DNA of 63,032 nucleotides, counting the filler, from Neoconidiobolus thromboides FSU 785 (Eukaryota > Fungi > Entomophthoromycota): assembly GCA_025603075.1 (NCBI GenBank). It is 8 parts of 8 records of this genome, joined end to end, with 100 filler letters (N's around TTAATTAATTAA, not from the genome) between each part and the next. Parts side by side here need not be neighbours in the genome. Positions count along the whole stretch, not along the records: positions 1 to 8,237 come from MU626688.1; 7 more parts are not named here. The stretch is one strand, 5' to 3'. How positions within the stretch are numbered: position 1 is the first letter of the stretch; each line of letters starts with the position of its first letter. Under the pieces are notes generated by a model, which had not been told where the DNA came from, ran no database searches, and saw only the letters and a list, made by a program, of their open reading frames with translations. This document shows, piece by piece, positions 1,488 to 7,708 of this stretch. A program made the position numbers and the translations under genes.

Positions 1488-2521
1488 TTAAGCCTCTTTT
1501 TTAACCTCTGCACCTTCCTTGTTTTGAAGTTGACTAAGTTCATCTGAAAGACGGTTAAATTCCAAATCCAATTGATCAGCTTGTTTCTTTAAAGTTTCAT
1601 AATCCACTACTTTTTTGTTTGCAATAATAAGATCATCTCTTAATTTGGCGATTTTTTTTTCTTGATCCTCACTTGTGGATGTACCAGTATTATTATTGTT
1701 TAACTATTATTAAAAAGATTAATATTAAGATATTATAATTTGTTTAAATGTGATCTTACCTTATCTTCTAAAAGAGTTATTTTTTCTTCAGTATTTAGCA
1801 ATTCCATAATATTAGAATAAGTATAGTTAAGTACCCTAAATAAAGTATTAGTAAGCTATAATAAATAAAAGTAATATATTAATTACAATGAAAGGAATAA
1901 GGTAGACCCAGTTAAATACCTAAAATAATTCATTAATAAATTATAGTACTATGTTTTATATTCACTTACATATTACGTTGACTATAAAACTTCTTTGAGT
2001 TAATGTTGGTATCTAATCTTACATCTGACACTTTATCCGTATTTTCATTTTGTTCATTTACTCTTACCATACGATTAATAGAATCTAATAAAAAATTCAA
2101 TTATGACTCAACTATAAGGACTGAAATAAATTTACCAACAAACAAAATAAAGATGAAGCTATATTTAAAATAAAATAAAATAAAATAATTAATATTGAAA
2201 ATTTGTATTATAAAATAAAAACTTACACAAATACAATCTTTAAAGTATAATCAACTCTAGCAACCACATTTTTAGATACCCAAATAAGTGCGTTCCTACG
2301 GATAGTAGAAGGGATTGGAATCTAATAAAGGGCAGATTAAAAATCATTTACAAATCTCATTAGTAGTCAAATCGACTTACAATAAGCGCCAAAAACAGAG
2401 CGATCTAAAGCAGTAAAGATAGAAAAGAAAGAAAATTAATAATCGATCTTAATCAGAGCAAAACAATTAACTTTACCTCAGTTAAAAGTACAGCAAATAC
2501 CAATTGATAATAAAGAGCCAT
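1488..2521 (-). CDS. BCAP31: BAP31/BAP29 (Yet3-like) ER membrane protein, multi-exon
   Basis: Spliced manually: MALYYQLVFAVLLTEIALFLALIIPIP...FIFILFVDSINRM...KKFYSQRNMYLTGSTLFLSLVLN...coiled coil...YETLKKQADQLDLEFNRLSDE...KKEA*. Three TM segments plus the QRNMYLTG motif. Missed by the ORF track because the exons are short. Confidence 0.92.
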
Positions 2522-3015: not shown

Positions 3016-4775
3016 ATGAATTGTGTAATGACCGGTCAAGATAAAGTCGAATTAGACAAAGATTTGATAAATTTTTATAAAAAAAAATTTGGTAATGCTC
3101 TTTTATCTTTTCTAGAAAACCTAAACTCAAAATTAATGATAATTATTCACTAGATCATTTATCTGTTGAACACACTGAGCTATTAACACAAATTGAAAGT
3201 ATCAAAATCAATAAGGAATTATTTTTTAATTTAGATCTAGAAAATAAAAAACGAAATCAAGAAATATTTAAATTACAAAGATTGTTGTCCGAAACTCAAC
3301 TGGAATTGGGGAATGAGCAAAGGAGGAACTTGGTATTACAAGAGGAGATCGACAAGGCAAAAAGTAATATTCAAAGTTCTGTTTATTTTGCTATTATTTA
3401 ATAGGATTCATCGTTAGTTCGTGAAGTTCAAGATCGAGATTACATAGCTACTTTATTAAGTAAAAGTAAAAGTAAGGATAAAAGTAATTGGAGAGTTAAA
3501 TTCAAGTGAGTTTATTTTAGATAGTAATAAAATAATGATAAGAAAATAATAATATCAAAAAGTAATCGATATCAAAAAGAAGGGTGGAATGAAACCATTA
3601 AAACGAATTTGGAAAGCGAGAATCGAAGTTTAAAAGTCAAAGTTAGTTCCTTGGAAATTCAATTGGAAGAAAAAGTGAGTTCTTATTTTTATTCTATTTT
3701 TGATAAAGTTTAAGAGATATTCTAAAGAATTCACAATATGAGATTATGTATAATACCTTATATAACGATCGGCAAGCATGGCTAGAAGAAGATCAAAGAT
3801 ATAAACAAAGTGAAGTTCAAAAACAACAAAATTTAATAAATGAAATTGATAGGACTAAAAAGTTGGCGGTAGCAAATTTAAAAGGTAATGAAATCCAAAT
3901 AGAGTAACAAATGATCGATTTTAAGATTTTATATAGAACTGGTTGAATTAAAAAGAAAACATAGACAAAAGGAATTGATATTAATGGAAAATGAACTAAG
4001 ATATCAACAGGAAATTAAGAGGCTAAAAAATGGTAACTCAAGCGATCCAAATCAAACGATATTATCTTCAAGTTTGTCGTTTATTGACTCAAATCAAAGT
4101 ATGTTATCAAATAACAATCAACACAATAACAGTAGTAGTTTTCTATTTCATCATAATATTTATAGAGTAAGTGAAGAATTATATCATTTAAATAAGGATA
4201 AAAGTTAATGAGATTTTTTATTTAGGAAAAACAGTTTTCAATTAAAGATTATGTAAGGCAAATTAAAGCATTAAGAAAATCATTAAGAGATAAACAAAAA
4301 GAAATTACAGAGTTAAAGGTAAAAGCTATCGTGTACAATATTTAATTAAATTCAATTGGACAATAATTTTTAGTTAAAAAATATAGAACTTCAAAAAGAA
4401 TATGAAGAACACGTAATACAAACTAATAATAAAATGGATCAATTGACTCATAGGTAATAAAAATCAGATTCAATTATTGTTAATTGATATCATTACATTT
4501 CATTTTATTAGATGTCAATCAATAGATCGAGAAAGTAAATACAAGTTGGAAGGTTATTGTAATTCGATAAAAGATATTCAAATTGAAATAAGAAATTTAG
4601 AAAAAAGTTTAATGGAACATTATCAATTAATTAATGCTAAAGATTGGACTTGTTTAAGGCGAGGTAAGTTTAAAAAAGTTGATTTTTTCATTGAGTTGAG
4701 GAGTTAATGTTGTTTTTTATAGTACAATATTTATTTCAAAAAACAGGTCAATTGTTAGATAAATTTAAAAGGTAA
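3016..4775 (+). CDS. CCDC77: CCDC77-like coiled-coil protein, about 10 exons (start codon tentative)
   Basis: Canonical GT-AG splicing gives one frame: DLINFYKKKFDHLSVEHTELLTQIE...KRNQEIFKLQRLLSETQ...KIREVQDRDYIATLL...LYNDRQAWLEE...TNNKMDQLTHRCQSIDRESKYKLEGYCNSIKDIQIEIRNLEKSL. These blocks are colinear with human CCDC77 as recalled. Confidence 0.75.
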
Positions 4776-5226
4776 AAAAGTTGAAAATGATCCTGTTGTA
4801 TGAACAGTTTTTAGAATTTCAAGTGCATGTAGGCTATCTTTAGTGAATTTTATATGGTGAGTGACTTAATTTGTGTCAAATTGTAAAATAAATTAAAACA
4901 ATATTACATAAATATTAATATAACTTAAGTTTATAAAAATTCATAATACTTCAAATAAAAAATCTACAGCCATATAGAAAAAAAGATTCAAAGTATCTAA
5001 AATCAATCTCAGTTTTTAATTATTAAATTGAATAAGTAATCGGATGAAAGATTTAAATTTAAAGTTAAATAAAATAAAAAAATTATTGCTTTATTATACC
5101 AAATACAACTAAAAAAAGCACAATAGCTATTTTAAAGAAATTCATTTATCAAAAACAACTTATTTCAAACTATTAGATTCTAAATAAATGTAAGTTTCAT
5201 ATAACATAAATTCCATTAAAAAATAA

Positions 5227-5335
5227 TTTTATTTATTTTATTTTATTTTATTTTATTTTATTTTATTTTATTTTATTTTATTTTATTTTATTTTATTTTA
5301 TTTTATTTGTATTTTATTTTATTTTATTTTATCTT
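5227..5335. repeat. (TTTTA)n microsatellite
   Basis: About 20 near-perfect pentamer units. Confidence 0.95.
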
Positions 5336-5433
5336 ATTCTATTTAGCATCAAAATTTAATATTCCAAAACCTAAAGCTTTATTTTTTTTAAATTTCAATG
5401 TAGCTCAATGCATTTAATAATACAAAATCTATT

Positions 5434-5538
5434 ATAAGGGGACGTATTTTTTTATTCAAGAATTTTATTAACACTTTTTCCACTCAAATAGTGCTTAAAA
5501 AATGAAAAAAGTGATGAAATTAAAAAGTACTACAATAT
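5434..5538 (-). mobile_element. Family-1 MITE copy (degenerate)
   Basis: GGGGACGTATTTT...CCACTCAAATAGTGCTTAAAAAATGAAAAAAGTGATGAA matches the reverse consensus. Confidence 0.8.
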
Positions 5539-5919
5539 TGCTTTATCATTTTTATAATTAATTATAATATAATAATTGTTTGAATTGTTTAAAAATTAAT
5601 TACAGCCTTATAATTAATTTGGTTAGCTTCAGGTGATTTTGCTACTGAAAATTATTATATTCTTAAATTCAGGGATAATTAATTTGAGGTTTTATCATCT
5701 AATTATAAAAAATATTATTTTTGTATTTTAATATTTACGTTTAATAACTATAATAAAAAACAAAAAGATAAAATGGTAAAAAAATAAAAAAATATTTACA
5801 TTTTATCAAAAATAATAATAAATTAAAGGTTTGTATAACTTCAAACAAATTATAAAATTTAATGATTTCAAATACGAAGCAAGAATATTAAATAATACTA
5901 AAGCAATTATATTTAAGAT

Positions 5920-6353
5920 TGCGAAATATTGCTTTGTCAGCTCCATGATTGACTATAACATAATAATTACTTAAGTTATTGTGTTCTTGATTTTGAAGAC
6001 AATCAATCCCAAGTCTTTTTTGATTTACTGCGAGAATCTCACACTTCACATTGGAAAGAATATTATCTTCCTGTTTTGATATCCATACTTGAAGTTTAAA
6101 AGAGATTTTAGAACATAATAACTCGAGACTTTTTAATCGAATTGTTCCTTGATATTGTACTTTTAATAAAAGGCACTAAATCTTTCTGGTAGTATTTTAC
6201 ATAGATTTTACAGTATTGTTGTCTATTATATTTATCTTACATATTCTGTAGCATATTACTTGGTATTTCCATAAACTAAGATCTTTCGACTTACAGCATA
6301 TTCAACAAGCAATAATTGCTTTTGGCTCCACTCACTGGGTACCAGATTTCAAA
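5920..6353 (+). mobile_element. Family-2 TG...CA element, diverged copy
   Basis: TGCGAAATATTGCTTTGTCAGCTCC...GGGTACCAGATTTCA, colinear with 52758-53222. Confidence 0.8.
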
Positions 6354-6368
6354 TATATATATAAATAA

Positions 6369-7429
6369 ATGCATCAAAAAAAGAGGGATAAAATTCAAAA
6401 CAAGGCACCATTTATAAAACCTACTGATATTGAAAATCTTACTGGCGAAAACATAGATGAAAGTAGAGTTGAATTAACTGAATTAGTTAAAAAACCAGTA
6501 GAATCAAATATGAACAAAAAAGTTTCAAAGTTAGTTAAGCTCAATACTAGTAAGTTTACAATAAATAAATAAAACAATACTTATATTTAATAGGTGATGA
6601 GATTTTGGAAAGATCTGTGAATATAATGTCAAACTCAATAGAAATAAGTAAGTTTTTTGATTTAAAACAGAAAGGCAATTATTTAAAAGGATGTTTGTTA
6701 TATTTTGGCCCTACAACTTTAAAGTTGCAATTTCAATATGAAAGATTAGCTAAACTTACGGGTGCAAAGTGTACAATTCAGTTTAAGCCTAAAAAGATTA
6801 CCCACTTTTTATTACTTGATTCATATAAAGGGATGACATCTTATGATTCAATAACTAAAAATTTTGATTTTAAAGTAATTTCTTGTGTCTGGCTTGTAGA
6901 ATGTTATCGACAAGCTATACACTTAAATGAGGTAGATTATCCAAATACATATGATTTCAGCCCTCAAATATATTCTTTGTTACAATTTAATGAGCAGAAA
7001 ATTGCAAAAACAGGGTCTAATATGTTTGATGAATCAAACGATCAATCAGTAGCAAAAGATCTCTTAAGTGAAGATCTCAATGCTCAAAAAAGCCCAAAAG
7101 GATTTGTTTGTCAAGTGATCACACTCAAAGAACAGTTTTTTTTATTAAGCTACCACACTGCAGCAAGAATGGATGTATTAAATAACTGTACTAAAACAAC
7201 CATGCTTGCTCCAAATGTTAAGGCCAATGATGAAAATAGTGTTCCAGAGAATGACCCAAGATATACTGAAGCTATTGAAAAGCTTACAAACAACTTCATC
7301 AATAATGTCGAAACCATTATTCAAGGCTATATAGTCAAGAGGTTAAAAAAAAGCGATAACAAAAGAAAATGGAATAATTACGTTAACCATATAGCTATAA
7401 AAGTAATCTCCAAGTTGAAGAAAAGATAA
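6369..7429 (+). CDS. BRCT-domain protein, 2 exons
   Basis: A GTAAGT...TAG intron joins ORF 6369 to ORF 6605. BRCT features: YLKGCLLYF...LAKLTGAK...KITHFLL...VISCVWLVECY...LNEVDY. Confidence 0.75.
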
Positions 7430-7604: not shown

Positions 7605-7708
7605 ACATAGGGATATTTTTTTTGGCTTCATCACTTTTACATTTTTAAGCATTATTTAAACGGAGATATTGGTAGTAAAATTCTTAAATAAAAAATACAT
7701 TCTCATAT
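7605..7708 (+). mobile_element. Family-1 MITE copy
   Basis: ACAT|AGGGAT...CATTCTC|ATAT with consensus body. Confidence 0.85.

Follow-up and report, generated by a model that had tools for sequence, protein, structure and literature searches.

Introduction

Human CCDC77 lies between neighboring microtubule triplets, at the A-C linker and within a few nanometers of the tubulin wall, and forms this linker together with WDR67/TBC1D31 and MIIP, by which the proximal centriole wall is held together (PMC11060037, PMC12290023). Without the A-C linker, the triplets lose their cohesion proximally, and duplication is impaired (PMC11060037, PMC12290023). CCDC77 is present in those organisms whose centrioles have an A-C linker and absent from those without one (PMC12290023). 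An earlier reading of the DNA analyzed here, made from its letters only and referred to below as the sequence-only reading, had described CCDC77 as an A-C linker protein of triplet microtubules, in agreement with both of these reports (PMC12290023, PMC11060037).

The locus described in this study comes from Neoconidiobolus thromboides FSU 785, which is placed by taxonomy in the Entomophthorales, a non-zoosporic lineage. The sequence-only reading had assumed an apparently non-flagellated fungus, and the host is indeed not a zoosporic one. A centriole-like ring is present at the spindle pole body of Basidiobolus. In Coemansia, electron microscopy has shown a nine-fold microtubule ring in the spindle pole body, the composition of this ring being unknown (PMC6070874), and the non-flagellated fungi split from their flagellated relatives about 660 million years ago (PMC7865070). 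No ultrastructural reports for Conidiobolus or Neoconidiobolus were found in a literature search. The window, that is, the whole stretch of DNA that was analyzed, comprises 63,032 nucleotides from eight records of the genome, joined end to end with filler, and the gene under study occupies positions 3016-4775 on the plus strand.

Results

Structure of the gene at 3016-4775

The region 3016-4775 (+), read by hand from the sequence, contains a gene of ten exons, running from an ATG to a stop codon and encoding a coiled-coil product of 416 amino acids. When the exons were joined and compared for equality, the spliced model was identical, letter for letter, to KAI9290731.1, which is recorded in GenBank as a "hypothetical protein" with the locus tag K502DRAFT_368995, on contig MU626688.1 (8237 nt) of assembly GCA_025603075.1.

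All of the exons lie on the plus strand. Exon 1 (3016-3091) encodes residues 1-25 plus one nucleotide of the next codon, carries the block LINFYKKKF, and is followed by the donor GTAATG at 3092, while exon 2 (3154-3363) encodes residues 26-95. Exon 3 (3418-3505) contains KIREVQDRDYIATLL. The stretch SLKVKVSSLEIQLEEK in exon 4 (3563-3674) was aligned to TLQLQVEALQAQLEEQ of the metagenome contig JAAUYA010218846.1, and LYNDRQAWLEE in exon 5 (3728-3884) was aligned to LLEDRRVRIEE of the same contig, which is described below. Exon 6 (3937-4166) encodes the end of the second long helix and then an N/S-rich, low-confidence linker, and the third long helix begins in exon 7 (4226-4318). Exon 8 (4374-4453) is followed by exon 9 (4512-4663), which contains KLEGYCNSIKDIQIEIRNLEKSL and the site of a degenerate pattern at 4549-4610, and the gene ends in exon 10 (4723-4775) with a TAA stop codon at 4773-4775.

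GT-AG borders were found at all nine introns, which are 52-62 nt long and have a GC content of 21% versus 26.5% in the exons, and each of the nine contains an in-frame stop codon when read through. The coding sequence of 1251 nt is translated into the 416 amino acids with no internal stop codons. The longest stop-to-stop ORF in the region of the gene is 101 amino acids; hence, the gene does not appear as a single ORF in the ORF list. The sequence-only reading had proposed a gene of about ten exons hidden from the ORF track, and the ten exons, nine GT-AG introns, and ORFs of at most 101 amino acids found here are in full accord with that proposal. Scans of the window for Rfam families and tRNAs gave no match.

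Predicted architecture of the product

The AlphaFold2 model of KAI9290731.1 is nearly all alpha-helical, with predicted helices at residues 7-111, 120-130, 133-246, 255-269, 283-390, and 396-415, among which those at approximately 7-111, 133-246, and 283-390 are long. The N/S-rich stretch at residues 247-295 was modeled with a pLDDT below 50. The AlphaFold2 and Pfam results together show the architecture characteristic of CCDC77, i.e., a protein of approximately 400-500 amino acids that is coiled coil throughout and has no further domain.

Neighborhood of the gene

The neighboring gene at 1488-2521 (-) encodes a 208-amino-acid protein of the BAP31 family (Pfam Bap31 and Bap31_Bap29_C), the C-terminal coiled coil of which corresponds to the ORF at 1491-1703. 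A called gene at 6369-7429 (+) encodes 338 amino acids with no Pfam family on record; the ORF at 6605-7426 within it gave a sub-threshold match to BRCT (E 0.009, 16.6 bits versus a cut-off of 21.3). A dispersed repeat of approximately 600 nt is present at 111-694 and, inverted, at 5449-6267, with a fragment at 7635-7695, and its copies are 76-87% identical. The inverted copies flank the BAP31 gene and the CCDC77-like gene and contain short, similar ORF pieces; this repeat is probably a degraded mobile element. Downstream of the CCDC77-like gene, an intergenic stretch of 15-18% GC carries an (ATTTT)n microsatellite of approximately 24 copies at 5226-5344.

Standard searches for relatives of KAI9290731.1

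A word-indexed phmmer search of 5.8 billion proteins with full-length KAI9290731.1 found no relatives besides the protein itself at E values up to 0.001, and the self-match was also the only one obtained with the full-length protein at E values up to 10 and with region 1-115. In an exhaustive search of 1.84 billion representatives, the exon 2 query (69 amino acids) matched residues 27-95 of KAI9290731.1 with 100% identity, and nothing else was retrieved except one weak match to an aphid coiled coil. No Pfam match was observed for the whole protein or for the nine exons of at least 20 amino acids, and phmmer against the PDB gave no match. A scan of metagenomes with a back-translated peptide of KAI9290731.1 yielded 86 pattern matches, none of which was a relative. 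The Pfam result is uninformative, because the protein encoded by JAAUYA010218846.1, to which KAI9290731.1 is compared below, matches no Pfam model either; neither Pfam nor the PDB has an entry for the family to which that protein belongs, which explains the blank results from both databases.

In the ESM Atlas, the proteins closest to KAI9290731.1 in features or in shape were a mixture of coiled coils, both bacterial and centrosomal, that had few features in common with it, and a fold search with the AlphaFold2 model likewise returned generic coiled coils. The nearest proteins by language-model features and shape were Spindly, PPP1R21, CCDC89, CEP89/SCLT1, CEP135, SDCCAG8, and intermediate filaments. 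These shared 115-144 of 256 features with KAI9290731.1, fewer than members of one family typically share, and the generic centrosomal and cytoskeletal coiled coils had TM scores below 0.5 and no sequence similarity to it. We therefore rejected them as relatives and regard them as look-alikes in composition or shape, given the low TM scores (<0.5) and the few features shared. Generic coiled-coil matches only, the outcome that the sequence-only reading had named as counting against it, were thus what the standard searches returned, whereas the alignments to the metagenome family reported below were significant.

The proposed CCDC77 blocks

The sequence-only reading had set fungal blocks beside strings quoted as human CCDC77, and these blocks lie at residues 17, 31, 95, 173, and 360 of KAI9290731.1. 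Each of the five quoted human strings found its best ungapped match in KAI9290731.1 at the quoted site, with scores of 27, 22, 35, 26, and 38 and a BLOSUM62 sum of 148. The signature elements Y-x-K-K ... E-x-x-x-L-L, K-I-R-E-L-E-D-x-x-K-I-Q-x-L-L, L-x-E-D-R-R-x-x-x-E-E, and L-E-x-E-G-F-x-x-D-I-K ... L-K-D-L-E all occur in order in KAI9290731.1, with block identities of 4/9 to 7/15, which alone are at chance level.

Decoys were scored as the best collinear chain of five ungapped segments, with the same freedom as the real blocks. Random sequences of the composition of KAI9290731.1 scored 182 +/- 11, windows of an aphid coiled coil 153-168, and reversed KAI9290731.1 224; overall, five-block chains from unrelated or shuffled coiled coils scored approximately 150-210, and single chance segments 42-80. 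By themselves, the five short blocks match no better than is expected by chance between two coiled coils. The likeness to human CCDC77 that had been claimed for the blocks therefore holds for their best-match sites and their order, but carries no statistical weight, as the sum of 148 lies against decoys of approximately 150-210. The significance of the homology comes from longer collinear alignments and not from the quoted blocks.

A metagenomic protein family with the proposed CCDC77 blocks

A degenerate DNA pattern for E-G-[FY]-x3-I-K-x-[LI]-x3-[LI]-[KR]-[DN]-L-E-x2-L was built from the positions common to KAI9290731.1 and the quoted C-terminal block. It matched the window once, at 4549-4610, and none of 200 shuffles. 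In the metagenome collection, the pattern retrieved two contigs, JAAUYA010218846.1 (L002) and JAAUYG010182846.1 (L003). The C-terminal block was excluded as evidence of homology, because it had been used to find them. Upstream of this block, both contigs encode LLEDRRVRIEE and KIRELEDRKKIQTLL, and a separate 5' exon ending in ...EEIVELQKALSDMQ is present in L002 only. Exon A of L002 is located at 1379-1537 and encodes 53 amino acids.

The contigs have a GC content of 40-42%. A human origin of the two was ruled out by their differing blocks, their differing gene structure, and the environmental metagenome sample from which they come. Although the two CCDC77-like genes are closely related, the last 399 codons form a single exon in L002 (1880-3076, +), whereas the same region of L003 (764-4996, -) is divided into at least five exons; this difference could be due to a partly processed copy or to lost introns. 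One intron of the CCDC77-like gene of L003 contains, at about 3040-3490 (-), tandemly arranged units of approximately 105 nt, in which the last part of the exon before it (...GQVGKEIFKV...) and the first part of the intron itself are repeated.

Three of the strings quoted as human CCDC77 were found in L002, at 12/15, 7/11, and 19/24 identity, indicating that the blocks given by the sequence-only reading are those of a real natural family. We take this animal-type coiled-coil family to be probably CCDC77 (human protein UniProt Q9BR77, PANTHER PTHR22091). In stretches that had not been quoted, the human protein also appears to agree with L002, such as at an exon end, ...LQKALSDMQ, and at ...FQEREHVLRLY.ENDRL, which we treat as a lead. 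The name CCDC77 is very likely the right one for the L002/L003 family.

The family that KAI9290731.1 shares with L002 and L003 could conceivably be one other than CCDC77, in which case the homology would stand but the link to centrioles would fall. Consistent with such a misnaming, no search result names the family: the members of its database cluster carry no family name, the L002 protein matches no Pfam model and gave in a phmmer search of the PDB only four weak matches, none of them to CCDC77 (best E 0.018), and none of the tryptic-type peptides expected of human CCDC77 was matched in literature text. We nevertheless consider a wrong name unlikely, as the strings quoted as human CCDC77 before any search are nearly verbatim in L002 and as the human protein appears to match further stretches of it.

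Homology outside the pattern

Two regions of KAI9290731.1 were compared with L002 by BLASTP, namely, residues 1-115 with exon A and residues 60-355 with the large exon cut before the pattern block (1880-2830). Residues 22-74 aligned without gaps to the entire exon A, with 16 of 53 positions identical (30%) and 29 of 53 positive (30.8 bits, E 1e-7). Residues 85-265 aligned collinearly to the large exon (30.8 bits, E 2e-5). Within the latter alignment, LVLQEEIDKAKIREVQDRDYIATLL matches LRLYAENDRLKIRELEDRKKIQTLL at 14 of 25 positions, and SLKVKVSSLEIQLEEK...LYNDRQAWLEE is set against TLQLQVEALQAQLEEQ...LLEDRRVRIEE. An hhalign comparison of residues 85-245 with the L002/L003 profile gave an E value of 3e-6 and a probability of 88%.

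For either piece, the real BLASTP score was reached by none of 1000 global shuffles and none of 1000 window shuffles, and both reversed KAI9290731.1 and an unrelated aphid coiled coil scored below it. In a decoy calibration with the same BLASTP settings, the decoy maxima were 24.6 and 28.1 bits versus 30.0 and 30.4 bits for the real pieces. On fixed diagonals against L002, the identities were 16/53 for residues 22-74 (raw score 77), 16/35 for residues 75-109 (raw score 61), and 21/86 for residues 147-232 (raw score 85). Residues 75-109, which comprise the KIRE block and its flank, correspond to the first part of the large exon of L002; the segments 22-74 and 75-109 adjoin in KAI9290731.1, and their counterparts in L002 are separated by a splice site but by no additional residue. 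Residues 22-109 taken as a whole showed 32 identities in 88 ungapped positions, far above the range of single chance segments (42-80). The aligned stretches extend from residue 22 to approximately residue 386 of KAI9290731.1, with identities of approximately 20-36% in a protein of biased composition.

The presence of two independent, collinear regions in full-length order makes a chance similarity very unlikely. The gene might still be regarded as a lineage-specific orphan coiled coil that resembles CCDC77 through its K/E/L/Q-rich heptad composition, a reading in keeping with the lack of any relative of KAI9290731.1 in the protein database searches, with the blank or generic results from Pfam, the PDB, and the Atlas, and with the failure of the five quoted blocks to rise above decoys. 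Such an origin appears quite improbable, however, because each of two pattern-independent regions outscored all 2000 shuffles as well as the reversed sequence and a real but unrelated coiled coil, and because these regions are collinear, one of them ungapped across a whole exon of 53 amino acids, with the hhalign E value of 3e-6 in addition. Judged from the alignments, KAI9290731.1 is in all likelihood a true, albeit very divergent, member of the L002/L003 family. The homology claimed by the sequence-only reading was thus borne out for this family by the BLASTP E values of 1e-7 and 2e-5, by hhalign, and by the decoys.

Discussion

Our overall reading is that KAI9290731.1 is probably a divergent, collinear homologue of the CCDC77 family, encoded by an intact gene in a fungus without flagella. 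The host, as a flagellum-less member of the Entomophthorales, falls outside the phyletic pattern of CCDC77, which is that of organisms building centrioles with an A-C linker. This unexpected distribution is a point of interest and no ground against the homology of KAI9290731.1. An A-C-linker-type homologue in a flagellum-less fungus would mean either that proteins of this family also work elsewhere than in triplet centrioles or that a piece of the centriole is kept at the spindle pole.

A relic that is decaying or not expressed, and that is disappearing in the wake of centriole loss, would agree with the extreme divergence of the sequence and with the absence of a detected orthologue in other fungi, in searches that also missed L002 and L003, but is hardly credible in view of the unbroken ten-exon frame of 1251 nt in a genome of 26% GC, where stop codons are frequent, the nine GT-AG introns of 52-62 nt, the conservation spread over most of the length of KAI9290731.1, and the fact that such a frame would not last hundreds of millions of years without selection (PMC7865070). 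An intact gene whose ten exons have stayed open at 26% GC over approximately 660 million years suggests, rather, that some function has kept it under selection.

Building flagellar basal bodies could not be this function, as the host has no flagella. At the spindle pole body, the microtubule-organizing center of the nucleus, KAI9290731.1 may instead be bound to microtubules and serve as a long coiled-coil linker or scaffold. A linker or scaffold role at the spindle pole body is the most likely one in our judgment, and we put it forward with modest confidence. The sequence-only reading had suggested a retained component of a vestigial centriole or of a transitional spindle pole body. A more specific proposal of this kind, by which the entomophthoralean spindle pole body still contains a ring derived from the centriole, with this protein as one of its structural remnants, is putative and rather doubtful; if true, it would provide the first molecular handle on the transition from centriole to spindle pole body in fungi. 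KAI9290731.1 offers a concrete gene with which centriole remnants at fungal spindle poles can be tested. Further, since standard searches miss fast-evolving coiled-coil orthologues, tables of gene loss in fungi may overstate the losses of centriolar coiled-coil proteins.

Comparison with the known members of the family brings out several differences. The intron pattern of the gene differs from that of the L002/L003 gene, in which both the linker in the middle of the protein and the C-terminal tail are longer; in the alignment, KAI9290731.1 stops about 15 residues short of the end of the animal-type tail. No long N-terminal extension precedes its first block, and an N/S-rich linker of its own is found at approximately residues 247-295. 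Human CCDC77 is a centriolar protein, whereas the host of KAI9290731.1 lacks a flagellum, and no centriole has been described in it. The comparison with the human protein is an indirect one, made through the L002 protein, to which KAI9290731.1 is approximately 20-36% identical. Nonetheless, human CCDC77 and KAI9290731.1 are alike in consisting entirely of coiled coil, in being of similar size, in having no other domain, and in carrying the quoted blocks in the same order.
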